NCBI GenBank assembly: GCA_051530055.1
Contig: CM121341.1
Location: forward strand, 19,074,784-19,138,783
Direction: 5' to 3'
Length of the DNA stretch: 64,000 bases
Source of the DNA: Neoechinorhynchus agilis
Lineage: Eukaryota; Animalia; Acanthocephala
In this document: positions 9,069-49,164 of the stretch, piece by piece
How positions within the stretch are numbered: position 1 is the first letter of the stretch
Layout of the letters: each line of letters starts with the position of its first letter
Position numbers and translations under genes: made by a program
The notes under the pieces: generated by a model
What the model was told of the DNA's origin: nothing
Databases searched by the model: none
Seen by the model: the letters and a program-made list of their open reading frames with translations, nothing else

Positions 9069-9500
9069 TTATATTAAAATTAGTGAAAAGCGAATGTCCT
9101 GGATTCTATAGTTTGCGTAACACAAGAATTCGATCAAGCAATAAAGATAACACTTTATTGAAAATATCGCAATGACTATACCATAGATGGAAGCCTGCGA
9201 TTTTAGCCGACCTTCATTAGCAGAGGCAGCTACTCGGTTATGCCTCTGCTCATGGCCCACAAAGCTATGTGGTTCCAGTATTGAACCCAGTGGTACTTTT
9301 TAAAATAGTCCGTATACCGATCCCCATAGAGCGCATAGTGGTACTGATACACCTGAGTCAACCAAGTGATTTCGTATTGGAAATCGTTGTAGATCCAGGC
9401 AAGTTCAAGGGCCGTGTACATTTCGTTTCAAGGATGAGTGATGAAGATGGTTCTTTGGTTCGAAAACGGAGTGACGCTCGAACCAAGTAGACTTTAACGA
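9069..9500 (-). pseudogene. Possible GT22-family (PIG-B/PIG-Z-like) mannosyltransferase fragment with in-frame stop and frameshift
   Basis: - frame reads RTIFITHP*NEMYTALELAWIYNDFQYEITW, reminiscent of the family HPDE(F/Y)xQSLEV..TWEW motif. Similarity is weak and the frame is interrupted. Confidence 0.25.
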
Positions 9501-10057
9501 GTGCACAAACGGAAACTATTAATGGTAAACATAGCACCAAAATAGTACACGGGCGTTCAAAGTTTGCTCAACAACTCGAAAACTAATAAGCAAACATGTT
9601 TACTAGAACACCTTTATAATGCTTCAAAACGACGTAAACGACAATCTTTTCAAGGAAAAATTGGGTTCCTCACGCGTAGAATAAAATTACGACCAGGCGA
9701 TAAATTAATTTCGAAAAGTTCAGAAAACATTTAAATGCGTAACGATAAACAAACACTTAAATAAGCAATGCCATACCGAAGAGATGGCGGCAACGAATTC
9801 GATACAAGTATATTCAGGCCCATTAAACAAAGAAGCAATAATACTGCTGCGATTATTTCTCGTAGTCAACACGAGACATTCGGTCAACAAACTACAATCC
9901 CGGAAAATTGCGAACTAACAAAATAAACACAACAACAGCTAGAACCACGGAGGCGTAATATTGAAAACTACATGTCGTAAGAAGATTCTTCCGCGTCTTT
10001 ATATCGCCTCAACGCAGAACGTCCAATAAAAACCTTACTCAAAATAGCGACTTGCAT

Positions 10058-10630
10058 ATGGGTTTCGGAAAGCAAGCGGAAAGTAGTAAACCTGTACAGA
10101 GAATTTCTCGAGGTCGTGGAGGCCCACGTGGGAGAGGAGATAGTCGAGGGCGTCAAAGAGGAGGTCGAGGAGGCGGGCGCGATTTTGATATGGGACCACC
10201 TCAAACCGTCCAACCAGCCGGAGAAATTCTACACCCTTGCGAAGGACAACTCGTTCTCAGGTCAGAGATCAAGTCACACGTCCCCTATTTCAATGCTCCC
10301 ATCTACTTGGAAAATAAAGAACAAATAGGAAAAGTCGATGAGATTTTCGGACCAATCAATGAGTACTATTTTTCAGTAACAATGATGGATAATATGAAGG
10401 CGAATTCATTCAACAAGGGAAAGCAGCTTTTTATCGATCCAAGAAGACTTCTTCCCCTGGAAAGGTTTCTGCCGCAAGCGCCAGGAGCGAAAAGCACTCG
10501 AGGCGGTGGAGGCAGAGGACGAGGCGCTGCAGGCGGACGTGGAATGAATCGTGGAGGAATGAAACGACGTGGAGGTGGATTCGGATCATTCCGTGGACCC
10601 AAGCGAGGACGGTTCGGTGCCCGTAGATGA
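10058..10630 (+). CDS. GAR1: H/ACA snoRNP subunit GAR1
   Basis: RGG-rich N- and C-termini around the core [60 protein letters not shown]. Single exon. Confidence 0.97.
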
Positions 10631-10783
10631 TATTGTAAAATAACGAAGAAAAGTGCATAATGCCCTCTGTCGTCCTGTTTAAGAAATGATAATTTGTCTT
10701 CTGATTTGCGAATTATTGTAGTCAGCTTCTTAGTTCCTTTGCAACACAGAATTTATTCAATTTCTTTAAAATATTTCTTAACT

Positions 10784-13700
10784 GCGAAAATGATGAACAA
10801 AAAGACAGGGACATCCGATTTAAAGGGATGATGATTTGTCTTCTTCTGATTCGCAAATTATTGTAGTCAGTTTTTCAATTGTTCTAAAAAGCACGAATTT
10901 CTGTCTCATTCAAATATTTCTTAATTGCGAAAATGATGATCGAAACCGATTTTTAGAGATGATGATTTGTCTTCTTCTGATTCGCAAATTATTGTGGTCA
11001 GTTTTTTAATTGCTTTAAAAACCACGAATCGCTGCCTATCATTCAAATATTTCTTAATTGCGAAAATGATGATCGAAACCGATTTTTAGAGATGATGATT
11101 TGTCTTCTTCTGATTCGCAAATTATTGTAGTCAGTTTTTTAATTGCTTTAAAAACCACGAATCCCTGTCTAATTCAAATATTTCTTAATTGCGAAAATGA
11201 TGATCGAAAGATAGGGACATCCGATTTTTAGAGATGATGATTTGTCTTCTTCTGATTCGCAAATTATTGTAGGCAGTTTTTCAATTGCTTTAAAAAGCAC
11301 GAATCGCTGCCTATCATTCAAATATTTCTTAACTGCGAAAATGATGATCGAAAGACAGGGACATCTGATTTTTAGAGATGATGATTTGTCTTCTTTTGAT
11401 TCGCAAATTATTGTAGGCAGTTTTTCAATTGCTTTGAAAACCACGAATCGCTGCCTATCATTCAAATATTTCTTAACAGCGAAAATGATGATCGAAAGAC
11501 AGGGACATCCGATTTAAAGGGATGATGATTTGTCTTCTTCTGATTCGCAAATTATTGTAGTCAGTTTTTCAATTGTTCTAAAAAGCACGAATCTCTGTCT
11601 CATTCAAATATTTCTTAACTGCGAAAATGATGATCGAAAGACAGGGACATCCGATTTTTAGAGATGATGATTTGTCTTCTTCTGATTCGCAAATTATTGT
11701 AGGCAGTTTTTCAATTGCTTTGAAAACCACGAATCGCTGCCTATCATTCAAATATTTCTTAACCGCGAAAATGATGATCGAAAGACAGGGACATCCGATT
11801 TAAAGGGATGATGATTTGTCTTCTTCTGATTCGCAAATTATTGTAGTCAGTTTTTCAATTGTTCTAAAAAGCACGAATCTCTGTCTCATTCAAATATTTC
11901 TTAACTGCGAAAATGATGATCGAAAGACAGGGACATCCGATTTTTAGAGATGATGATTTGTCTTCTTGTTATTCGTCAATTATTGTAGGCAGTTTTTTAA
12001 TTGCTTTAAAAACCACGAATCGCTGCCTATCATTCAAATATTTCCTAACTGCGAAAATGATGATCGAAAGACAGGGACATCCGATTTAAAGGGATGATGA
12101 TTTGTCTTCTTCTGATTCGCAAATTATTGTAGTCAGTTTTTCAATTGTTCTAAAAAGCACGAATCTCTGTCTCATTCAAATATTTCTTGACTGCGAAAAT
12201 GATGATCGAAAGACGGGGACATCCGATTTTTAGAGATGATGATTTGTCTTCTTTTGATTCGCAAATTATTGTAGGCAGTTTTTCAATTGTTTTAAAAACC
12301 ACGAATCGCTGTCTCATTCAAATATTTCTTAACTGCGAAAATGATGATCGAAAGACAGGGACATCCGATTTTTAGAGATGATGATTTGTCTTCTTCTGAT
12401 TCGCAAATTATTGTAGGCAGTTTTTCAATTGTTCTAAAAAGCACGAATCTCTGTCTCATTCAAATATTTCTTAACTGCGAAAATGATGATCGAAAGACAG
12501 GGACATCCGATTTTTAGAGATGATGATTTGTCTTCTTCTGATTCGCAAATTATTGTAGGCAGTTTTTCAATTGCTTTGAAAACCACGAATCGCTGCCTAT
12601 CATTCAAATATTTCTTAACCGCGAAAATGATGATCGAAAGACAGGGACATCCGATTTAAAGGGATGATGATTTGTCTTCTTCTGATTCGCAAATTAGTAG
12701 TCAGTTTTTCAATTGTTCTAAAAAGCACGAATCTCTGTCTCATTCAAATATTTCTTAACTGCGAAAATGATGATCGAAAGACAGGGACATCCGATTTAAA
12801 GAGATGATGATTTGTCTTCTTCTGATTCGCAAATTATTGTAGTCAGTTTTTCAATTGCTTTAAAAACCACGAATCTCTGTCTCATTCAAATATTTCTTAA
12901 CTGCGAAAATGATGATCGAAAGACAGGGACATCCGATTTTTAGAGATGATGATTTGTCTTCTTCTGATTCGCAAATTATTGTAGTCAGTTTTTCAATTGT
13001 TCTAAAAAGCACGAATCTCTGTCTCATTCAAATATTTCTTAACTGCGAAAATGATGATCGAAAGACAGGGACATCCGATTTTTAGAGATGATGATTTGTC
13101 TTCTTCTGATTCGCAAATTATTGTAGTCAGTTTTTCAATTGCTTTAAAAACCACGAATCTCTGTCTCATTCAAATATTTCTTAACTGCGAAAATGATGAT
13201 CGAAAGACAGGGACATCCGATTTTTAGAGATGATGATTTGTCTTCTTCTGATTCGCAAATTATTGTAGTCAGTTTTTCAATTGTTCTAAAAAGCACGAAT
13301 CTCTGTCTCATTCAAATATTTCTTAACTGCGAAAATGATGATCGAAAGACAGGGACATCCGATTTTTAGAGATGATGATTTGTCTTCTTCTGATTCGCAA
13401 ATTATTGTAGGCAGTTTTTCAATTGCTTTGAAAACCACGAATCGCTGCCTATCATTCAAATATTTCTTAACCGCGAAAATGATGATCGAAAGACAGGGAC
13501 ATCCGATTTTTAGAGATGATGATTTGTCTTCTTCTGATTCGCAAATTATTGTAGTCAGTTTTTCAATTGTTCTAAAAAGCACGAATCTCTGTCTCATTCA
13601 AATATTTCTTAACTGCGAAAATGATGATCGAAAGACAGGGACATCCGATTTTTAGAGATGATGATTTGTCTTCTTCTGATTCGCAAATTATTGTAGGCAG

Positions 13701-16020
13701 TTTTTCAATTGCTTTGAAAACCACGAATCGCTGCCTATCATTCAAATATTTCTTAACCGCGAAAATGATGATCGAAAGACAGGGACATCCGATTTAAAGG
13801 GATGATGATTTGTCTTCTTCTGATTCGCAAATTATTGTAGTCAGTTTTTCAATTGTTCTAAAAAGCACGAATCTCTGTCTCATTCAAATATTTCTTAACT
13901 GCGAAAATGATGATCGAAAGACAGGGACATCCGATTTTTAGAGATGATGATTTGTCTTCTTCTGATTCGCAAATTATTGTAGGCAGTTTTTCAATTGCTT
14001 TGAAAACCACGAATCGCTGCCTATCATTCAAATATTTCTTAACCGCGAAAATGATGATCGAAAGACAGGGACATCCGATTTAAAGGGATGATGATTTGTC
14101 TTCTTCTGATTCGCAAATTATTGTAGTCAGTTTTTCAATTGTTCTAAAAAGCACGAATCTCTGTCTCATTCAAATATTTCTTAACTGCGAAAATGATGAT
14201 CGAAAGACAGGGACATCCGATTTAAAGAGATGATTTGTCTTCTTCTGATTCGCAAATTATTGTAGTCAGTTTTTCAATTGCTTTAAAAACCACGAATCTC
14301 TGTCTCATTCAAATATTTCTTAACTGCGAAAATGATGATCGAAAGACAGGGACATCCGATTTTTAGAGATGATGATTTGTCTTCTTCTGATTCGCAAATT
14401 ATTGTAGTCAGTTTTTCAATTGCTTTAAAAACCACGAATCGCTGTCTCATTCAAATATTTCTTAACCGCGAAAATGATGATCGAAAGACAGGGACATCCG
14501 ATTTTTAGAGATGATGATTTGTCTTCTTCTGATTCGCAAATTATTGTAGTCAGTTTTTCAATTGTTCTAAAAAGCACGAATCTCTGTCTCATTCAAATAT
14601 TTCTTAACTGCGAAAATGATGATCGAAAGACAGGGACATCCGATTTTTAGAGATGATGATTTGTCTTCTTCTGATTCGCAAATTATTGTAGGCAGTTTTT
14701 CAATTGCTTTGAAAACCACGAATCGCTGCCTATCATTCAAATATTTCTTAACCGCGAAAATGATGATCGAAAGACAGGGACATCCGATTTAAAGGGATGA
14801 TGATTTGTCTTCTTCTGATTCGCAAATTATTGTAGTCAGTTTTTCAATTGTTCTAAAAAGCACGAATCTCTGTCTCATTCAAATATTTCTTAACTGCGAA
14901 AATGATGATCGAAACCGATTTTTAGAGATGATGATTTGTCTTCTTCTGATTCGCAAATTATTGTAGGCAGTTTTTCAATTGCTTTGAAAACCACGAATCG
15001 CTGCCTATCATTCAAATATTTCTTAACCGCGAAAATGATGATCGAAAGACAGGGACATCCGATTTAAAGGGATGATGATTTGTCTTCTTCTGATTCGCAA
15101 ATTATTGTAGTCAGTTTTTCAATTGTTCTAAAAAGCACGAATCTCTGTCTCATTCAAATATTTCTTAACTGCGAAAATGATGATCGAAAGACAGGGACAT
15201 CCGATTTTTAGAGATGATGATTTGTCTTCTTCTGATTCGCAAATTATTGTAGGCAGTTTTTCAATTGCTTTGAAAACCACGAATCGCTGCCTATCATTCA
15301 AATATTTCTTAACCGCGAAAATGATGATCGAAAGACAGGGACATCCGATTTAAAGGGATGATTTGTCTTCTTCTGATTCGCAAATTATTGTAGTCAGTTT
15401 TTCAATTGTTCTAAAAAGCACGAATCTCTGTCTCATTCAAATATTTCTTAACTGCGAAAATGATGATCGAAAGACAGGGACATCCGATTTTTAGAGATGA
15501 TGATTTGTCTTCTTCTGATTCGCAAATTATTGTAGTCAGTTTTTCAATTGTTCTAAAAAGCACGAATCGCTGCCTCATTCAAATATTTCTTAACTGCGAA
15601 AATGATGATCGAAAGACAGGGACATCGATTTTTAGAGATGATGATTTGTCTTTTTATTCGCAATTATTGTAGCAGTTTTTAATTGTTTAAAAACACGGGT
15701 CGATTTAAAGAGATGATGATTTGTCTTCTTCTTATTCGCAAATTATTGTAGTCAGTTTTTCAATTGTTGTAAAACCACGAATCGCTGCTCATCAAATATT
15801 TCTTAACTGCGAAAATCATGAACAAAAAGACAGGGACATCCGATTTAAAGAGATGATTTGTCTTCTTCTTATTCGCAAATTATTGTAGGCAGTTTTTCAA
15901 TTGCTTTAAAAAGCACGAATCTCTGTCTCAATCAAATATTTCTTAGCTGGGAAAATGATGATCGAAAGACAGGGACATCGGATTTATTGAGATGTATATT
16001 TGTCTTCTTCCAATTCGCGA
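10784..16020 (+). ncRNA. Array of box C/D snoRNA genes (SNORD74/snR64-like), one 70-nt gene per repeat unit
   Basis: Each unit: GCGAA stem - ATGATGA (C) - guide AGACAGGGACAT - CCGA (D'; CTGA in the unit at 11335) - ATGATGA (C') - TTTGTCTTCTT - CTGA (D) - TTCGC stem. The guide is antisense to the LSU rRNA UGUCCCU(A/G)UCU tract. Confidence 0.82.
11621..11690 (+). ncRNA. Representative intact box C/D snoRNA unit
   Basis: Stem 11621-25, C 11627-33, guide 11639-50, D' 11651-54, C' 11664-70, D 11682-85, stem 11686-90. Spacing matches kink-turn geometry. Confidence 0.85.
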
Positions 16021-16580
16021 ATTGTTATAATTAGTTTTTAATTGCTTGGCAACACAGAATTTGTTCGATTTCTTTAAAATATTTCTTAACCTCGAAAATG
16101 ATGAACAAAAAGACAGGGACATCCGATTTAAAGTTAAAATCATTTTTTCGTCTGATTCTTGTTTTATTGATGTATTTTTTGCTTTTTTGCGAAAAATGTT
16201 AAAGTATTTTTAATTTTTTGGTTAAAACTTTTAGCTTGAACCTGTAAAAAAATCATAAGGCGACGAATTATTGCTTGTGTACTACACTCAATCCGACATT
16301 TTGCGCATCTTTATGTTCGCAGCTTTAGGTCAAGAATTCAGCTGCTTTTAATTATTCAAAGACGATATTTAGAAGCCGTGGAATTGTGTGACGGTTTCAC
16401 ACGCTTAGAAGGATAAAAATAGATCTATAAAAGTAACGATGTGAATGGAGGAACATCTTTATCCTCCTTTTCCCTCGAGGATGCATCCAGCAGTTCCTTT
16501 CTGAATTGCACAGCTGATGATTCTGTCTTTTGATATCCACATTCACTCAATCGTTTAAAAATTCGCGTAACCAAAGGTTT

Positions 16581-17534
16581 TCAAATTAAAATGCTTGATT
16601 TTACGTTAAATATATTTTTCGGGCAGATATTGACCGACGTGGTCTCAGAATCTTGCACACTGCTGCGACTTTTTGTCGTCTTCATAGTGTAAACGATTGT
16701 TAGCTTGTGAGAGTGTCGTCCTAGGTATCTCCGGAGCATCCGATCATAACGTGGACATGGAAATGTTGGTGGAGATTTCTGTTTTTCCATTTCTTCCTTT
16801 TTCTGATTCTCGTAGACTTCTATTAGATCTTGACAACAGAGAGAATTTCGCAAGAGTAATTTTTTTAGTGAGCCTTTCAAGCTCTTTCCCGGGGTTCCTC
16901 TTGGACGGTGGCCGTTTTCAATTTCTCCGGATAGAATCTGCTTCAAAAGGCCGGTGTTAAGGCGGCGTTGGATACGTCCAATCAAGTGGAATTGGTGCTT
17001 CAAACTCATACCTAAAATACTTGCGATTTTATATTGTTTATCCTATCTTCCCACTTTACTCAAGCGTTCAAGATTGTTGATTTGTTTTCTATAAAGTGTC
17101 CATCTTTCACAGCCATATAAAAGAGTTGATAGGACAACAGCCGTCCGCTATTTGAAAACAGGATTGTATAGACGACAATACGCAACGCGAGAGGCTCACA
17201 TTCTACTCTGGCTATCTGGAGTGAGATCGTTGTTACTGGTGATGCTGCTGCCACGATAGCATAATCTTCCGACTCTTTCTACCGGTTGGTTGTTGCTGTG
17301 TAGTGCTCCTTGAAGGAAGTCTCGGGAAATTGGCTGAATCATGTGCTTAGTTTCATCGACGTTCACTAATAGCCCGGCCACATTGTACGCGTTAGTGAAC
17401 AGATCCGTGCTGCTGTGAAGATCGTCCAAGGATGTTGCTAGAACTTCATTTTCATGAACGTACTGTAGCTCTGTTACATTGATGGAGAATGTTTTCGAGA
17501 TCGATTTCAGACATCTGAGATTGAACAGCACCAA
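16581..17534 (-). mobile_element. Degenerate RTE-clade non-LTR retrotransposon 3' part
   Basis: Fragments FTNAYNVAGLLVNVDETKHM, YRGSSIT, LLKQILSGEIENGHRPRG and a terminal CPRYDR..LGRHSH across several frames. Confidence 0.65.
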
Positions 17535-17643
17535 ATTTGTTTATGGAATGTTTACTTGAGATTGGCTAACTTTGATCCGAAAGAATTTACTTCTTTTGAA
17601 TCGTTGATGGTTGTTTGTACTTGTGTTTAGCCGATATTTTAGA

Positions 17644-19653
17644 ATGTTTGGGAACTTTTCTAAGACTTTGGTTCAATCTAGCGGAGGTGGCTTGTTCGGT
17701 AGCAGTGCAGTGCCAAAAACAACGGCTTCAACGTCCAATAGCATTTTTGGTATGAGCTCGCTGGCGACCCCTGCTGCTCGTGGCACAACGGTTAAATTTG
17801 AACCTGTTACGCTGACTGAGATGGTCAAAAAAGGGAATACGAATGTGAAACAAAACTTAAAGTACATGTCAGTCTGTTTTATGAAGAATTATGAGAGTAA
17901 AAGCATTGAGGAACTAAGATGGGAGGATTATGATGATGGAAGGAAGGGGAAGCCTGTGCCTACGACAACTGCTCCTTCATTGGCTATAACACCGAGTAGT
18001 GGACTTTTTGGCGCTACTGTGGCAACTCCAACGCCCGCTACTACTACATCTTCTACTAGCTTATTCGGTTCTACATTTACGTCTGGATTCGGTACTAGCA
18101 GCACAGGTGGAAACTTCTTTAAGTCAGCCACAACTCCTGCAACGACCACAACTAGTTCATTGTTTGGTGCATCAAAACCAAGCATTTTCGGATCCACGAT
18201 AACGCCCGCGGCTACCACTACTTCGTCATCTTTATTTGGATTTGGCGTCAATAAACCATTTGGTGCTACTTCTACGACTACTGCGTCTTTAACTCCGTTC
18301 GGGTTTGGATCAACTTCAGCAGCAGCAACTACTACCACGAGCTCTCTCTTCGGTTCGTCCATCTTTGGCGGATCTTCGTCAACTGCACTAACAGCGAGCA
18401 AACCCTCTGGACTATTTGGAGGGTTCGCATCGTCAACTACGACCGCGACGTCAACGCCAAGTTTGTTCGCTTCTTCATTTTCAACGCCTGCAACCACACA
18501 ATCAAGCTTGTTTGGAACAACTACGGGCAGTGTCTTTGGCTCAAATTCCATAGCGACACCTGCTGGAGCTTTTGGAGCAAGTTCGTTGTTCGCATCAAAG
18601 CCTCTATCTCTTGCCACTTCAGCCCCGGTCATTGCTTCGACCCCAGTAACCACGACTCCATCGCGATCACCACAGGAAATCGCACGAAAAATGCTCCATC
18701 ATGTTCATTCGCTTCCATATCGCGCACTCTACGAAAATAAAGAATTTCATAAGTACCAGCAAGAAATGATGGAAGCCAAGGAGCGGATGAACGAGCCCTT
18801 AAAACTAAAACCTCTTATTTCTTCCTTCGCGCCGAGCACCCCTAGCATCATCAACAAATCAATCGATGTCTATCTTAAGTCGAAGAATCAAAGTCGATAT
18901 TCCGATAATTTCAAACAGAATACAGTGCCCGTTTTGCGACCCATTGCTCCAAACTTTAGGCGACTTGTCTTGGAACCTTTTGTCGATGAAGTAGATAATG
19001 GACAAGATGAGATTTCAGGTACTTTTGATGAACAAAATACACTTCTTTCACGTCCTGTTGTTACCCTGACAAGACCAGACTATTATACGGAACCACCGTT
19101 AAAAAGAGAAGATCAGACATTTTGGTAACCTTTCCATTAGTTTTGCCTATCAGAAATCGGTTTAAATCTCTTTGTATGCAGTAAGCGTCACCGGCTTACT
19201 TTCATTTGATCGAAATCGATGCCTCTTTTTATCTTCGTTTGATCTTTTTGAATAGATGAACTTAGTGTGGATCCGATAACTGGCAAATGTATGGTTCGCG
19301 ACTTTACAGTCCACCGACGTGCAGTGGGATCGATTCGGTGGCCCGGAGTGACCGATGTACGGAACATGAATCTGGACGAGATTGTGTCAATTGAACACAT
19401 GGAGATATTCGTGTATCCTTCTGGTACTGAACGGCCCATGGTTGGTGACGGTCTCAATAAACCGGCGTTCGTAACGCTCCATGGAGTGTTCCCATTTGAT
19501 GATGCGAGGAATGAGTTTGTAAAGGACCCAGAAGCTATCAAAATAATGGAGTTTCCCAAGTACGTCGAGGAGCAGACTGAACTAATGCCGGCCCAATTCA
19601 TTACTTATGATAATTTACGAGGTACGTGGGTCTTTAAAGTCAATCACTTTTGA
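17644..19653 (+). CDS. NUP98: Nucleoporin Nup98 (FG/GLFG repeats, GLEBS, autoprotease domain), no Nup96 fusion; intron about 19125-19265
   Basis: MFG start, GLFG/SLFG repeats, GLEBS motif GTTVKFEP...YESKSIEELRWEDY, YYTEP, and NKPAFVTLHGV...YDNLRGTWVFKVNHF*. Confidence 0.95.
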
Positions 19654-31888: not shown

Positions 31889-34665
31889 TTATTCTATAAT
31901 TGGCAAAATAACATAATTGAAAAACTTTGCTCTAAACTCTGAACTGTCGAACATTCTCGCTCGTTTCCGGGCTTCGTCTCGGATCGTTTCCTTCGAAGTG
32001 TTGTCCATTTTCAAAATATTTGAGATTTTGTTGACGTACTCGTCGACACTCGCGGCGCAGTAGCCGCACCGCGACGAAGTTTTCATTGGTGCGATTATAT
32101 CTTCGAGTGGACCGGCGGATTTGTGCGCTACCATAATGAGTCCAGCGTTCATCGACTCGACAATGGCTGTAGTTAAAAGCGTGATTAAAATCCAAGATAG
32201 TATATATTTTAAGATGCTTGCAAACTCACCGATTCCGAAGTGTTCATCAATCATAGTGTGTATCCCAATGGAGCTACGAATAAGAGATTGCTTTAAAGCA
32301 TTGGCACTGATTCCACATGCAAACCAAAGTGTAGTGTCGGTATCCCTTTCCAAATCTTCAACGGGATTTTTAGTAACTTCAAATGAAATGTGCTTAGAAA
32401 ATGCGATTCCAATGAGGTCAGCAACTCGCTTCCGATCTTTTGAATCTCTACAACCTCCTATCATAAGAAGTCTTACTTTGCCCCGGAACTCTGGATATCG
32501 CGAAAACAGCTCATCGATTATTTCAATCTGCATAGCCAGATTCTTCTCTTGTCTAAACTGAGCCACTGATACTATCACGGGTGGAATGAATCTTTCAACA
32601 TTTCGCTCTTCCTCTTGTATAGGAGAGCCATCACATGGAGGATAAATAAGAATGGCATGCCGGTCCCATTGGTTCTCAATGTGACGCTTTGTCCAAGTTG
32701 AATTCGCTACCACAAAAGTACACAGCCTTCCACATTGCTTATATACAAAACTAAGTCCAGAATAGTAAGTATCCTTTAGTTTACTATGGTGATCTCTTTT
32801 TATTGAGTCATTGATGGTCGGATAATGCACATAGGCAATAATATAATGTATTCCACCGAGAAATCGGAATATTGGATACGTGAAAGCATATCCGGCAGTA
32901 TCGATGAGAGCGTCTACATTGCTTATACGAAAACTGCCCTCTGCGGCTGCAACCATTGAGCCAATACTTTGCCCAAGTATTGCAGCGAATTTGTATCTTT
33001 CTGCTTTTAAAAGACCGTGAGTTAAAATTCGTACAATTTCGATCGGACATTCAATCTTTATTCCGAATTGATCGTTAATATGCGTTTTCACTTCGAGCTC
33101 ATCCGGGCACGAACTGGCCGCCAACACAGTGATATGAATGTTTTTTCTACGAAAGCAAACCGTTGAGTATGAACCGATTAATACAAGGGCGAAGAAGAGA
33201 GTTGATTATGGCTCTCATTATAAAAAAAGACTCATTTTAATTGCGTATTTTTTCAGCGAAGAAAAATCTTTGTTCAGCATCGTTGTAAAATGCCCAAGTA
33301 ACGACGAGAGCATTTCATTATGGAAACCATTATGAAACGCCTTCTGCTGCGCTAATAATTTCGCATACGAGTTAAAAAGACATTCAATTGTGAAAGGGAG
33401 AAGAGAGTTGAATACGGCTCTCGTTATAAAAAAAGGACTCATTTGCATTGTGTATTTTTTCAGCAAAGAAAAATCTTTGTTTAGCATCGCTATAAAATGC
33501 CCACGTTAATAATTTCGCATACGAGTTAAAAGGGCATCTAATTGTGAAAGGGAGAAGAGAGTTGATTATGGCTCTCATTATAAAAAAAGACTCATTTTAA
33601 TTGCGTATTTTTTCAGCGAAGAAAAATCTTTGTTCAGCATCGTTGTAAAATGCCCAAGTTACGACGAGAGGATTTCATTATGGAAACCATTATGAAACTC
33701 CTTCTGCTGCGCTAATAATTTCGCATACGAGTTAAAAAGACATTCAAATGTGAAAGGGAAAAGAGAGTTGAATACGGCTCTCGTTATAAAAAAAGGACTC
33801 ATTTGCATTGTGTATTTTTTCAGCGAAGAAAAATCTTTGTTTAGCATCGCTATAAAATGCCCACGTTAATAATTTCGCAAGAGAGTTGATTATGGCTCTC
33901 ATTATAAAAAATTTTTTGTTTTTTGGGTGTGTGTTGTTGTTGAACGAGTAAAAGGGCATCCAATTGTGAAAGGAGAAGAGAGTTGATTATGGCTCTCATT
34001 ATAAAAAAGGACTCATTTTAATTGCGATTTTTTCAGCGAAGAAAAATCTTTGTTCAGCATCGTTGTAAAATGCCCAAGTAACGACGAGAGCATTTCATTA
34101 TGGAAACCATTATGAAACGCCTTCTGCTGCGCTAATAATTTCGCATACGAGTTAAAAAGACATTCAATTGTGAAAGGAAGAGAGTTGATTATGGCTCTCA
34201 TTATAAAAAAGGACTCATTTTCATTGCGTATTTTTTCGGCGAAGAAAATTCCGCTTAGCGTCGTTGTAAAATGCTAACGTTAATAATTTTGCAAACGAGT
34301 TAAAAAGACATCCATTTATGCCACAATCGCTAACTACTTCGCCTGATTGAAATTTTGATTTCTTGCTAAGATTTTACAAAGCAAACCTACATCTTTTCTT
34401 CAAGAGATTTGATGCTGTGCCAGAGGACTTTCTCGCCACCTCCGCCGGCCATACAATTCGGATGGAAAAAAGCCACATGGAAACGATCGTCGGGTCGATT
34501 TAGACGGTTCATCCTCGATCGTATGATCAATATGACCGAGATAACACCAATAGTGACGGCCGTTGTGGATAAAATCGTTATTCCGAGAGGTACCATTAAC
34601 AGAAATGCTCCTAAGGCCAAGGAGATTACCGCAAATGTCAGTATTATCAGACTTGTGATGCACAT
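31889..34665 (-). CDS. ALG11: GDP-Man alpha-1,2-mannosyltransferase ALG11; introns 33147-34390 and 32167-32229
   Basis: [63 protein letters not shown] and [10 protein letters not shown]. Both introns are GT-AG and restore the frame. Confidence 0.93.
33190..34320. repeat. Tandem repeat (alternating about 205- and 150-bp variants, about 7 cores) filling ALG11 intron 1
   Basis: Core GAGTTGATTATGGCTCTCATTATAAAAAA..GACTCATTT..CAGCGAAGAAAAATCTTTGTTCAGCATCG recurs repeatedly. Confidence 0.95.
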
Positions 34666-44810: not shown

Positions 44811-47800
44811 ATGAATTTTTCGGAGACGTTCATATTCATTAAATAAAAAGGGAGCCCATTATCGAATTGCGAGTGTCCTAAAAGCCGAAGAAACACTTTG
44901 ACGTTCAATCGTCATAAACCGCATGGATCACCGATAGAGCGCCAATGTTCCAGAACAGAACCTTGGGTAAATTTGGACGATTTCGATGTACTTTTCGGAG
45001 ACGTTCATATTCATTAAATAAAAAAGGAGCCCATTATCGAATTGCGAGTGTCCTAAAAGAAGAATAAATATTTTGACTTTCAATCGTCATAAAACGCATC
45101 GATCACCGATAGAGCGCCAATGTTCCAGAACAGAACTTTGGGTTAATTTGGACGATTTCGATGTACTTTTCGAAGACGTTCATATTCATTAACTCAAGAA
45201 GGAGCCCATTATCGAATTGCGAGTGTCCTAAAAGAAGAATAAATATTTTGACTTTCAATCACCATAAAGCGCATCGATCACCGATAGGGCGCCAATGTTC
45301 CAGAACAGAACTTTGGATTAATTTGGACGATTTCGACGTACTTTTCGGAGACGTTCAAATTCATTAAATAAAAAAGGAGCCCATTAGTGAATTGCGAGTG
45401 TCCTAAAAGAAGAATAAATATTTTGACTTTCAATCACCATAAAGCGCATCGATCACCGATAGGGCGCCAATGTTCCAGAACAGAACTTTGGATTAATTTG
45501 GACGATTTCGACGTACTTTTCGGAGACGTTCATATTCATTAAATAAAAAAGGAGCCCATTAGTGAATTGCGAGTGTCCTAAAAGCCGAAGAAACACTTTG
45601 ACGTTCAATCGTCATAAAACGCATGGATCACCGATAGAGCGCCAATGTTCCAGAACAGAACTTTGGATTAATTTGGACGATTTCGACGTACTTTTCGGAG
45701 ACGTTCATATTCATTAAATCAAAAAGGAGCCCATTATCGAATTGCGAGTGTCCTAAAAGAGGAATTAATATTTTGACGTTCAACCGTCATAAAGCGCATG
45801 GATCACCGATAGAGCGCCAAAGTGCCAGAACAGAACTTTGGGTTAATTTGGACGATTTCGACGTACTTTTCGGAGACGTTCATATTCATTAAATAAAAAA
45901 GGAGCCCATTAGTGAATTGCGAGTGTCCTAAAAGCCGAAGAAACACTTTGACGTTCAATCGTCATAAACCGCATGGATCACCGATAGAGCGCCAATGTTC
46001 CAGAACAGAACTTTGGGTTAATTTGGACGATTTCGATGTACTTTTCGAAGACGTTCATATTCATTAAATCAAAAAGGAGCCCATTATCGAATTGCGAGTG
46101 TCCTAAAAGAAGAATAAATACTTTGACGTTCAACCGTCATAAAGCGCATGGATCACCGATAGAGCGCCAATGTGCCAGAACAGAACTTTGGATTAATTTG
46201 GACGATTTCGATGTACTTTTCGGAGACGTTCATATTCATTAAATAAAAAAGGAGCCCATTAGTGAATTGCGAGTGTCCTAAAAGCCGAAGAAACACTTTG
46301 ACGTTCAATCGTCATAAACCGCATGGATCACCGATAGAGCGCCAAAGTGCCAGAACAGAACTTTGGGTTAATTTGGACGATTTCGATGTACTTTTCGAAG
46401 ACGTTCATATTCATTAAATCAAAAAGGAGCCCATTATCGAATTGCGAGTGTCCTAAAAGAAGAATAAATATTTTGACTTTCAATCGTCATAAAGCGCATC
46501 GATCACCGATAGAGCGCCAATGTTCCAGAACAGAACTTTGGATTAATTTGGACGATTTCGACGTACTTTTCGGAGACGTTCAAATTCATTAAATAAAAAA
46601 GGAGCCCATTAGTGAATTGCGAGTGTCCTAAAAGAAGAATAAATATTTTGACGTTCAATCACCATAAAGCGCATCGATCACCGATAGAGCGCCAATGTTC
46701 CAGAACAGAACTTTGGGTTAATTTGGACGATTTCGATGTACTTTTCGGAGACGTTCATATTCATTAAATCAAAAAGGAGCCCATTATCGAATTGCGAGTG
46801 TCCTAAAAGAGGAATTAATATTTTGACGTTCAACCGTCATAAAGCGCATGGATCACCGATAGAGCGCCAAAGTGCCAGAACAGAACTTTGGGTTAATTTG
46901 GACGATTTCGACGTACTTTTCGGAGACGTTCATATTCATTAAATAAAAAAGGAGCCCATTAGTGAATTGCGAGTGTCCTAAAAGCCGAAGAAACACTTTG
47001 ACGTTCAATCGTCATAAACCGCATGGATCACCGATAGAGCGCCAATGTTCCAGAACAGAACTTTGGGTTAATTTGGACGATTTCGATGTACTTTTCGAAG
47101 ACGTTCATATTCATTAAATCAAAAAGGAGCCCATTATCGAATTGCGAGTGTCCTAAAAGAAGAATAAATATTTTGACGTTCAATCGTCATAAAGCGCATC
47201 GATCACCGATAGAGCGCCAATGTTCCAGAACAGAACTTTGGATTAATTTGGACGATTTCGACGTACTTTTCGGAGACGTTCATTCATTAAATAAAAAAGG
47301 AGCCCATTATGTGACGAGTGTCCTAAAAGCCGAAGAAACACTTTGACGTTCAATCGTCATAAAGCGCATGGATCACCGATAGAGCGCCAATGTTCCAGAA
47401 CAGAACTTTGGGTTAATTTGGACGATTTCGATGTACTTTTCGGAGACGTTCATATTCATTAAATCAAAAAGGAGCCCATTATCGAATTGCGAGTGTCCTA
47501 AAAGCCGAAGAAACACTTTGACGTTCAATCGTCATAAACCGCATGGATCACCGATAGAGCGCCAAAGTGCCAGAACAGAACTTTGGGTTAATTTGGACGA
47601 TTTCGATGTACTTTTCGGAGACGTTCATATTCATTAAATAAAAAGGTGCCAATTATCGAATTGCGAGTGTCCTAAAAGAAGAATAAATACTTTGACGTTC
47701 AATCGTCATAAAGCGCATGGATCACCGATAGAGCGCCAATGTTCCAGAACAGAACTTTGGATTAATTTGGACGATTTCGACGTACTTTTCGGAGACGTTC

Positions 47801-49164
47801 ATATTCATTAAATCAAAAAGGAGCCCATTAGTGAATTGCGAGTGTCCTAAAAGAAGAATAAATATTTTGACGTTCAATCACCATAAAGCGCATCGATCAC
47901 CGATAGAGCGCCAATGTTCCAGAACAGAACTTTGGATTAATTTGGACGATTTCGACGTACTTTTCGGAGACGTTCATATTCATTAAATAAAAAGGAGCCA
48001 ATTATCGAATTGCGAGTGTCCTAAAAGAAGAATAAATACTTTGACGTTCAATCGTCATAAAGCGCATGGATCACCGATAGAGCGCCAATGTTCCAGAACA
48101 GAACTTTGGATTAATTTGGACGATTTCGACGTACTTTTCGGAGACGTTCATATTCATTAAATCAAAAAGGACATTAGTGAATTGCGAGTGTCCTAAAAGA
48201 AGAATAAATATTTTGACTTTCAATCACCATAAAGCGCATCGATCACCGATAGGGCGCCAATGTTCCAGAACAGAACTTTGGATTAATTTGGACGATTTCG
48301 ACGTACTTTTCGGAGACGTTCATATTCATTAAATCAAAAAGGAGCCCATTAGTGAATTGCGAGTGTCCTAAAAGCCGAAGAAACACTTTGACGTTCAATC
48401 GTCATAAACCGCATGGATCACCGATAGAGCGCCAATGTTCCAGAACAGAACTTTGGGTTAATTTGGACGATTTCGATGTACTTTTCGAAGACGTTCATAT
48501 TCATTAAATCAAAAAGGAGCCCATTATCGAATTGCGAGTGTCCTAAAAGAAGAATAAATATTTTGACGTTCAATCGTCATAAAGCGCATGGATCACCGAT
48601 AGAGCGCCAATGTTCCAGAACAGAACTTTGGGTTAATTTGGACGATTTCGACGTACTTTTCGGAGACGTTCATATTCATTAAATCAAAAAGGAGCCCATT
48701 AGTGAATTGCGAGTGTCCTAAAAGCCGAAGAAACACTTTGACGTTCAATCGTCATAAACCGCATGGATCACCGATAGAGCGCCAAAGTGCCAGAACAGAA
48801 CTTTGGGTTAATTTGGACGATTTCGATGTACTTTTCGAAGACGTTCATATTCATTAAATAAAAAAGGAGCCCATTAGTGAATTGCGAGTGTCCTAAAAGC
48901 CGAATAAATACTTTGACGTTCAATCGTCATAAAGCGCATGGATCACCGATAGAGCGCCAATGTTCCAGAACAGAACTTTGGATTAATTTGGACGATTTCG
49001 ACGTACTTTTCGGAGACGTTCATATTCATTAAATCAAAAAGGAGCCCATTAGTGAATTACGAGTGTCCTAAAAGAAGAATAAATATTTTGACTTTCAATC
49101 GTCATAAGACGCATCGATCACCGATAGAGCGCCAATGTTCCAGAACAGAATTTCGGATTAATTT
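44811..49164. repeat. 175-bp satellite, about 25 tandem copies, with two partly alternating variants
   Basis: ATGTACTTTTCG(A/G)AGACG recurs at 175-bp spacing (e.g. 46036, 46211). Variant blocks are AAAGCCGAAGAAACACTTTG and AAAGAAGAATAAATATTTTG. Confidence 0.99.

Follow-up and report, generated by a model that had tools for sequence, protein, structure and literature searches.

We describe here a tandem array of a box C/D small nucleolar RNA (snoRNA) gene in the acanthocephalan Neoechinorhynchus agilis, found in a 64-kb stretch of CM121341.1 (assembly GCA_051530055.1) that was analyzed as a whole and is called the window below. The array comprises about 38 copies, 26 of them intact, and is probably a working, selected multi-copy snoRNA gene array. 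It combines a known guide family with a gene layout that is unusual for animals, the RNA and such arrays both being of known kinds.

The array runs head to tail from 10677 to 16160 of the window and consists of 38 units of 142 or 144 bp on the + strand. Tandem Repeats Finder delimited it at 10769-15694 with a period of 286 bp (17.4 copies, 95% matches) and also with a period of 142 bp (32.5 copies), followed by a degenerate tail at 15701-16133. The anchor GCGAAAATGATGA, searched with up to two mismatches, was found 38 times between 10784 and 16092, always on the + strand and at a spacing of 131-144 bp, apart from a single composite unit of 213 bp. The initial annotation had placed about 39 units at 10784-16132; the array itself was recovered, and its count and limits were corrected to the 38 anchored units and to 10677-16160. 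At its 5' edge, local alignment revealed a degenerate partial unit 0 (10677-10783, + strand, about 80% identical to the consensus) that extends from the D'-C' linker to a decayed C' box, the D box, the 3' stem and the spacer. Repeat finding, the anchor and the unit alignment together defined the core (10784-15595, + strand), which holds units 1-34 (131-144 bp each, mostly arranged as a two-unit repeat of 142 and 144 bp, with recombinant types) and the 26 intact snoRNAs. The decayed tail (15596-16160, + strand) holds units 35-38 with the composite 213-bp unit and mutated C, C' and D boxes, and its Rfam scores are 27-34 bits. The last unit has kept the C box, the guide and the D' box and is diverged in its 3' half, and a weak similarity to the consensus dimer extends to about 16160. 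Nothing similar to the units was found elsewhere in the window by the Rfam scan or by a search for the guide. The regularity of the units greatly exceeds what chance could produce.

The unit alignment divided each unit into a 70-nt snoRNA segment and a spacer of 72 or 74 nt. The 70-nt segment reads GCGAA-AA-TGATGA-N5-AGACAGGGACAT-CCGA-N10-TGATGA-TTTGTCTTCTT-CTGA-TTCGC in DNA and GCGAA-AA-UGAUGA-UCGAA-AGACAGGGACAU-CCGA-UUUUUAGAGA-UGAUGA-UUUGUCUUCUU-CUGA-UUCGC in RNA. The order of the elements is canonical, namely 5' stem, C box, guide, D' box, linker, C' box, a short second guide position, D box and 3' stem. AUGAUGA stands 2 nt after GCGAA and CUGA directly before UUCGC, which leaves a terminal stem of 5 bp; the D' box is CCGA, the C' box a perfect UGAUGA, and the linker between them 10 nt long. 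The anchor, the alignment and a coordinate check all bore out the 70-nt stem-C-D'-C'-D layout first proposed for these units. In the intact copy at 13901-13970 (+ strand), which belongs to the commonest variant (15 copies) and was established by the strict pattern and the coordinate check, the 5' stem lies at 13901-13905, the C box at 13908-13913, the D' guide AGACAGGGACAT at 13919-13930, the D' box CCGA at 13931-13934, the linker at 13935-13944, the C' box at 13945-13950, an 11-nt stretch at 13951-13961, the D box at 13962-13965 and the 3' stem at 13966-13970. The second variant (8 copies), represented by the intact snoRNA at 13759-13828 (+ strand), differs only in the D'-C' linker, with TTTAAAGGGA for TTTTTAGAGA.

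Intactness was defined strictly, as the presence of both stems, the C box, the guide and the D', C' and D boxes. Under this definition the terminal stem and all other elements were present in 26 units, rather than the roughly 30 counted before; these represent five sequence variants, the two main ones being those just described. The remaining 12 of the 38 units carry disabling changes. An 11-nt deletion in units 2, 3 and 30 (window 10927, 11060 and 14896) removes exactly the D' guide GACAGGGACAT; these guide-less units keep the four boxes and the stem. One of them is distant from the other two and shares the same deletion, so copying within the array has spread the deleted form. In units 25, 33 and 36, 3 nt are deleted at the C' box, and the D box is mutated in units 5, 9, 11, 35, 36 and 37. 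Two single-unit variants reported earlier were also found, the yeast-type AGATAGGGACA of unit 11191 and the CTGA D' box of unit 11335, the latter in a unit that has a broken D box (TTGA) as well.

To assign the RNA to a family, we compared it with Rfam using E-value reporting. RF00357 (snoR44/J54/Z268, clan CL00069) was the best match of every guide-bearing unit, with a top score of 45.8 bits (E = 3e-7) over the full model length and with strong matches on the + strand only. The array guide AGACAGGGACAUC is identical to the consensus of this model, and the clan also holds RF00530, the Drosophila Me28S-Cm2645. The guide pattern AG(A/G)(C/U)AGGGACA, followed by 1 nt and a D' box and lying 3-10 nt after the C box, was found in the array. 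We also scanned a metagenome collection for a C box-N3-10-AGRYAGGGACATCNGA motif and obtained 82 loci from plants, algae, fungi and animals, all of which share the guide pattern; a scan with a 33-nt motif specific to N. agilis returned no match in the metagenomes. Most of these homologues are recognizable snoRNAs of 68-102 nt with a D box, and their terminal stems vary between lineages while the pairing is kept (GAGCA/UGCUU, GUGCA/UGCAC, UGUAUA/UAUACA, CGUG/CACG). Their D' boxes read CAGA, CUGA, CCGA or CGGA, so the CCGA of the array is normal for the family. Rfam assigned some of the loci to RF00357 and others to RF00530, and the short animal-type homologues scored at or below the cut-offs against RF00530 (48.1 bits for L014 and 35.4 bits for L013). 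Since genuine animal-type members also lie near the threshold, a near miss of the array RNA is no argument against common descent. Taken together, these comparisons support the array RNA as a member by descent of the SNORD74/snR64/snoR44-J54/Me28S-Cm2645 group, and the SNORD74/snR64-like assignment made in the initial annotation holds on the score, the identical guide and the clan.

We then considered the target of the guide. The 12-nt D' guide AGACAGGGACAU would pair with the large subunit (LSU) ribosomal RNA (rRNA) sequence UGUCCCUGUCU and would thereby place fibrillarin on the first C of UGUCCC. A conserved site that the human sequence shows, UGUCCCU(G/A)(U/C)CU, is complementary to it, and UGUCCCUGUCU would give a perfect 11-bp duplex with the common guide. 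Human SNORD74 (U74), which lies in a GAS5 intron, has been linked to 28S C3820 within GAUUCCCACUGUCCCUACC (PMC6856654) and yeast snR64 to 25S C2337 (PMC2806949), in agreement with the targets named for them in the initial annotation. Applied to the array guide, the D'+5 rule selects the first C of UGUCCC, which is the same cytosine as C3820 and C2337 and the one chosen originally. The array RNA would thus probably direct methylation at the equivalent of human 28S C3820 and yeast 25S C2337. The second guide position, between C' and D, has shrunk to 11 nt and is probably no longer guiding. A second rRNA target for this stretch was considered and discarded, as an 8-nt match (AAGAAGAC) to a conserved LSU segment is close to chance and the similar-looking homologue L068 would pair in a different register.

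The 11-nt C'-D stretch UUUGUCUUCUU is also able to form base pairs with the 5' portion of the D' guide (13918-13924 with 13952-13958). This pairing, AAGACAG/UUGUCUU, amounts to 7 bp including one G-U, is present in every intact unit and may be a helix or chance. It was marginal against shuffled sequences (p = 0.03-0.08) and is not general in the family; the homologues L041, L043 and L014 show it with a matching base change and others from the metagenomes do not. The spacers of the 142-bp units (e.g., 13863-13871) contain UCUCUGUCU, which is likewise complementary to the guide, and the minimum-energy fold of a two-unit precursor pairs UCUCUGUCU with the guide. A structured processing signal was rejected, given that this fold is marginal against shuffles (z = -1.95) and that neither a convincing conserved hairpin in the spacer nor an extended external stem was seen.

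Constraint on the RNA was examined through the distribution of variation among the units. In the 31 central units, we compared common variants, present in at least 5 units, with rare ones, present in 1-3 units, and counted as functional the 52 of 145 alignment columns occupied by the stems, by the C, D', C' and D boxes or by the two guide positions. All 12 common variants fell outside these columns (the spacer has nine of them, the D'-C' linker three), for which the probability by chance is (93/145)^12 = 0.005. The ratio of rare to common variants was 9:0 in the functional columns and 6:12 elsewhere (Fisher P = 0.001, with the guide deletion counted once). New mutations in boxes and guide thus arise without spreading while changes in linker and spacer spread, which is the pattern predicted by purifying selection. 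Three of the common variants lie inside the mature RNA, so simple protection of that region from mutation does not account for the result. These results suggest that purifying selection on the RNA keeps the boxes, the guide and the terminal stem intact in most units.

The main alternative is a snoRNA-derived satellite. In this account, unequal crossing-over multiplied one SNORD74-type gene together with its flank, and most or all of the resulting DNA is inert today; if a working copy exists, it would be a single unit or a gene elsewhere, and the conservation of the boxes would reflect recent homogenization. The layout of the array is that of satellite DNA, a long head-to-tail series of many units with decayed edges. 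Its basic period is the 286-bp two-unit repeat, in which 142-bp units with the linker UUUAAAGGG alternate with 144-bp units with the linker UUUUUAGAG. Recombinant types occur, such as units 12, 16, 18, 20 and 27, which join the second linker to the first spacer, decay grows towards both ends, and an older variant (AACAAAAAGACAGGG for UCGAAAGACAGGG) is common to the first unit and the last units. The two-unit repeat, the recombinant types and the older variants at both edges are the usual marks of an array that changes through unequal crossing-over and gene conversion, with homogenization of the center, and the original wording of a massive, homogenized amplification was accurate. Such dynamics are typical of satellites. 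Defective copies have also been duplicated, with the guide deletion in three units and the C' deletion in three among the 12 disabled ones, and relatives normally have one or two copies only. The surroundings are compatible with the same account, as the locus lies about 290 kb from the end of the 19.4-Mb chromosome sequence and an unrelated satellite lies 29 kb away. However, a satellite with no selected product would show variation spread evenly over the unit, whereas the frequent variants here avoid all 52 functional columns (P of about 0.005) and the rare ones hit them freely. Disabling changes stay at 1-3 copies, and no other copy of the conserved guide is present in the window. To a weak degree, an inert array of 5.4 kb right after a stop codon is also less expected in a compact 46-Mb genome. 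We therefore regard the satellite account as possible, though not likely. Both a high-dosage cassette and a satellite born from a snoRNA had been offered in the initial annotation; between these, the pattern of variation leans towards function.

The array fills a 7-kb gap between two genes that share its + strand. Upstream lies the gene for Gar1, a protein of the H/ACA small nucleolar ribonucleoprotein (snoRNP), with a coding region of 1197 bp including introns (9434-10630, + strand) whose last exon is 100% identical to the N. agilis protein ACOME3_004577 (Pfam PF04410). The next best match of this exon, which ends at 10630, is from Pomphorhynchus laevis. The ATG and the TGA were checked; the stop codon occupies 10628-10630, and array-like sequence starts 47 nt later. 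Downstream lies a gene for a Nup98-like nucleoporin (17607-19653, + strand) with an FG/GLEBS part and an autopeptidase domain. It is annotated as two models, 17607-19128 and 19291-19653, which look like halves of a single Nup98-type gene.

No AATAAA or ATTAAA was found on the + strand from the Gar1 stop codon until 16585, where the first canonical polyadenylation (poly(A)) hexamer, an ATTAAA (16585-16590, + strand), stands about 400 bp beyond the array. The unit consensus has no 5' splice site resembling GTRAGT, its GT sites being GTCTTC, GTAGTC, GTCAGT, GTTTTT and GTCTCA (the last is missing from the 144-bp unit type), so an exon-intron repeat in the style of SNORD115/116 is unlikely. The 74-nt spacer at 13971-14044 (+ strand), which belongs to the 144-bp type and holds most of the common variation between units, has neither a canonical poly(A) signal nor a consensus 5' splice site. 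The units share a single strand and are separated by spacers of 72-74 nt. As the array lies on the strand of its flanking genes, starts 47 nt past the Gar1 stop codon, has no canonical poly(A) signal and shows no evident promoter in each unit, the most economical and most likely model would be one long polymerase II precursor, perhaps arising when transcription runs on from Gar1. Individual 70-nt RNAs would be freed from it as the snoRNP proteins assemble and the spacers are trimmed, in the manner of plant, trypanosomatid and Euglena clusters.

Alternatively, each unit could carry its own promoter in the 72-nt spacer, of the polymerase II type of small nuclear RNA (snRNA) genes or of the polymerase III type, like tandem snRNA or 5S rRNA genes. 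In favor of this, even the edge units that have decayed retain the spacer blocks AAATATTTCTTAAC upstream and AAATTATTGTAG downstream, and a T5 run lies about 17 nt past the 3' stem in every unit. However, the A/T-rich block lies 8-15 nt upstream of the RNA 5' end, too near for a TATA box, and the Rfam gathering scan found no snRNA genes in the window with which a promoter could be compared. Transcription by polymerase III was moreover disfavored by an internal T5 run in the commonest intact variant, which would terminate this polymerase. Overall, promoters in each unit appear improbable.

A more specific form of the precursor would be a selected high-dosage cassette within the Gar1 transcription unit or within an operon-like Gar1-array-Nup98 precursor, which we consider doubtful. 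If this were true, a 3' extension of Gar1 would carry about 26 working box C/D guides and the supply of guides would be coupled to the expression of a gene of ribosome biogenesis. In this it would be similar to the polycistronic arrays known from trypanosomatids and Euglena, and we know of no arrangement of this kind, a messenger RNA followed by a snoRNA array, described in animals. Spliced-leader trans-splicing has been reported in bdelloid rotifers and not in a monogonont.

Several results weigh against a working array and have to be set against the pattern of variation. About one third of the units are defective, and because a few unit types carry the common variants as linked sets, these variants did not spread independently, though their positions are independent. 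The covariance search of Rfam, named as a check in the initial annotation, gave a divided answer, the RF00357 match appearing with E-value reporting and no match being returned at gathering cut-offs in the whole 64-kb window. The cut-off of RF00357 is 48 bits and the array RNA falls about 2 bits short of it, because the second guide that the plant-type RNAs have before the D box is absent and only 11 nt remain. Regarding the target, the pairing of the guide segment AGACAGGGACA with rRNA is derived from the sequences of other species. The array guide has a C where the yeast-type guide has a U, and the rRNA site of yeast and Drosophila, which we take to be CCCUAUCU, has an A opposite the guide C. 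If the worm rRNA read CCCUAUCU or UGUCCCUAUCU, a C-A mismatch would arise at guide position 9, and with an A in the rRNA only unit 11191 (AGAUAGGGACA) would pair perfectly. At the P. laevis Gar1 locus (L001, 27 kb), neither Rfam nor the guide pattern revealed a homologous snoRNA within 10 kb, which means that acanthocephalans in general do not share the arrangement. A single functional copy could also lie elsewhere in the genome, outside the 64-kb window that was searched. Finally, no gene is annotated within the 7-kb gap between Gar1 and Nup98, and the N. agilis genome paper mentions neither snoRNAs nor satellites (PMC12690905). In protein collections from public assemblies, exact look-up left 8 reading frames of the array unmatched, and a 577-residue six-frame query of the repeat had no match, a result that says nothing either way on expression. 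No transcript or annotation support was thus found in the annotation, the genome paper or the protein collections, in line with a satellite as well. Even so, we consider a working array the probable reading.

The copy number is approximate, since the assembly was produced by MaSuRCA from Illumina and Nanopore R9.4 reads of about 50 pooled worms (PMC12690905). Such a hybrid assembly might have inflated one or a few true copies into an array, and unit 35, with several single-base deletions that are possibly read errors, should be treated with caution. However, the units are not identical, and the ordered unit types, private substitutions and graded decay at both edges would not be created by an artefactual expansion; in addition, a Nanopore read of 5 kb or more can cover the greater part of the 5.4-kb array. 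An assembly artefact is therefore highly improbable. Origin by retroposition, as for a short interspersed element (SINE), was also rejected, the units being arranged head to tail with a constant spacer and having no poly(A) tails or target-site duplications.

Two other repeats were observed in the window. The unrelated satellite mentioned above occupies 44817-49164, with a 175-bp unit in about 25 copies and 93% matches, and contained no C/D box motifs and no Rfam match. At 33193-33879, 1.9 copies of a 360-bp segment, 98% identical, show an internal periodicity of 154 bp.

Animals normally keep their rRNA-guide snoRNAs as one or a few copies in introns of host genes. Here, a canonical and deeply conserved guide is present in about 38 tandem copies, directly behind the gene of a snoRNP protein, in one of the smallest animal genomes. 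This genome measures 46.2 Mb (PMC12690905). The array does not open or settle a major question; it offers a natural system in which to study how snoRNA dosage is set, whether snoRNAs can be processed from long tandem precursors in animals beyond the mammalian imprinted loci, and how selection and concerted evolution act in a small RNA gene family. If it were silent, it would show clearly how a functional RNA gene can give rise to a satellite. In practical terms, the array is unannotated, lies just below an Rfam cut-off and would be masked as a plain satellite.

Among known systems, the plant snoR44/J54/Z268 RNAs (RF00357) agree with the array RNA in the positions of the C box, the guide AGACAGGGACAUC, the D', C' and D boxes and the terminal stem. 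They are longer, at about 90-97 nt, and have a second guide AUGGGAAUCUCU before the D box, whereas the corresponding region of the array is 11 nt long and unrelated. Plant clusters also mix different snoRNAs, with 2 copies of snoR44/J54, in contrast to 38 copies of one snoRNA in the array. One metagenomic locus, L038 (259-838; contig Ga0041060_1003185), holds a plant-type cluster on one strand, with snoZ267, two adjacent snoR44/J54 and snoR122 within 600 bp.

Human SNORD74, yeast snR64 and Drosophila Me28S-Cm2645 (RF00530) address the same conserved rRNA site that is predicted for the array guide, and the animal-type metagenomic homologues, at about 70-77 nt, are of a small size similar to the 70 nt of the array RNA. 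The gene organization differs, as human SNORD74 is a single gene in a GAS5 intron (PMC6856654) while the array has 38 tandem copies and no annotated host intron. An ordinary animal arrangement was seen at L068 (about 940-1250; contig Ga0194135_10031701), where two SNORD74-type snoRNAs lie in consecutive introns, one in each, of a host gene identified from its exon translations as a UAP56/DDX39-like DEAD-box helicase. Across the 82 metagenomic loci (median 3 kb), two copies were present in ten loci and never more, counts to be read with the collapse of longer arrays in short-read contigs in mind.

Tandem clusters of snoRNA genes are known in protists (trypanosomatids) and plants. Tandem polycistronic snoRNA arrays have reportedly also been described in Euglena, by Moore and Russell in 2012. 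These arrays resemble the one in N. agilis: many snoRNA genes follow one another in the same orientation, the spacers are short, and no promoter is visible at the individual genes. Their repeats, however, usually contain several different snoRNAs per unit, whereas this array consists of a single snoRNA and is found in an animal. Processing from a long precursor would be the expected route in both, polycistronic transcription in N. agilis being a prediction.

The mammalian SNORD115/SNORD116 clusters (and SNORD113/114) share with the array the presence of dozens of near-identical box C/D copies in tandem in an animal. In these clusters the host transcript is built of repeated exons and introns, and every intron harbors one snoRNA; the snoRNAs are imprinted and, being orphans, have no rRNA target. 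Unlike them, the N. agilis unit has no consensus 5' splice site, as an intronic copy would have, and carries a canonical rRNA guide. The W-element satellites of Schistosoma mansoni are likewise tandem repeats of a parasitic worm with C and D box motifs (PMC8490949). Their snoRNA predictions, based on weak matches to assorted families, were called uncertain by the authors (PMC8490949). In contrast to the W-elements, the whole RNA, including the conserved rRNA guide, is recognizable in the N. agilis array.

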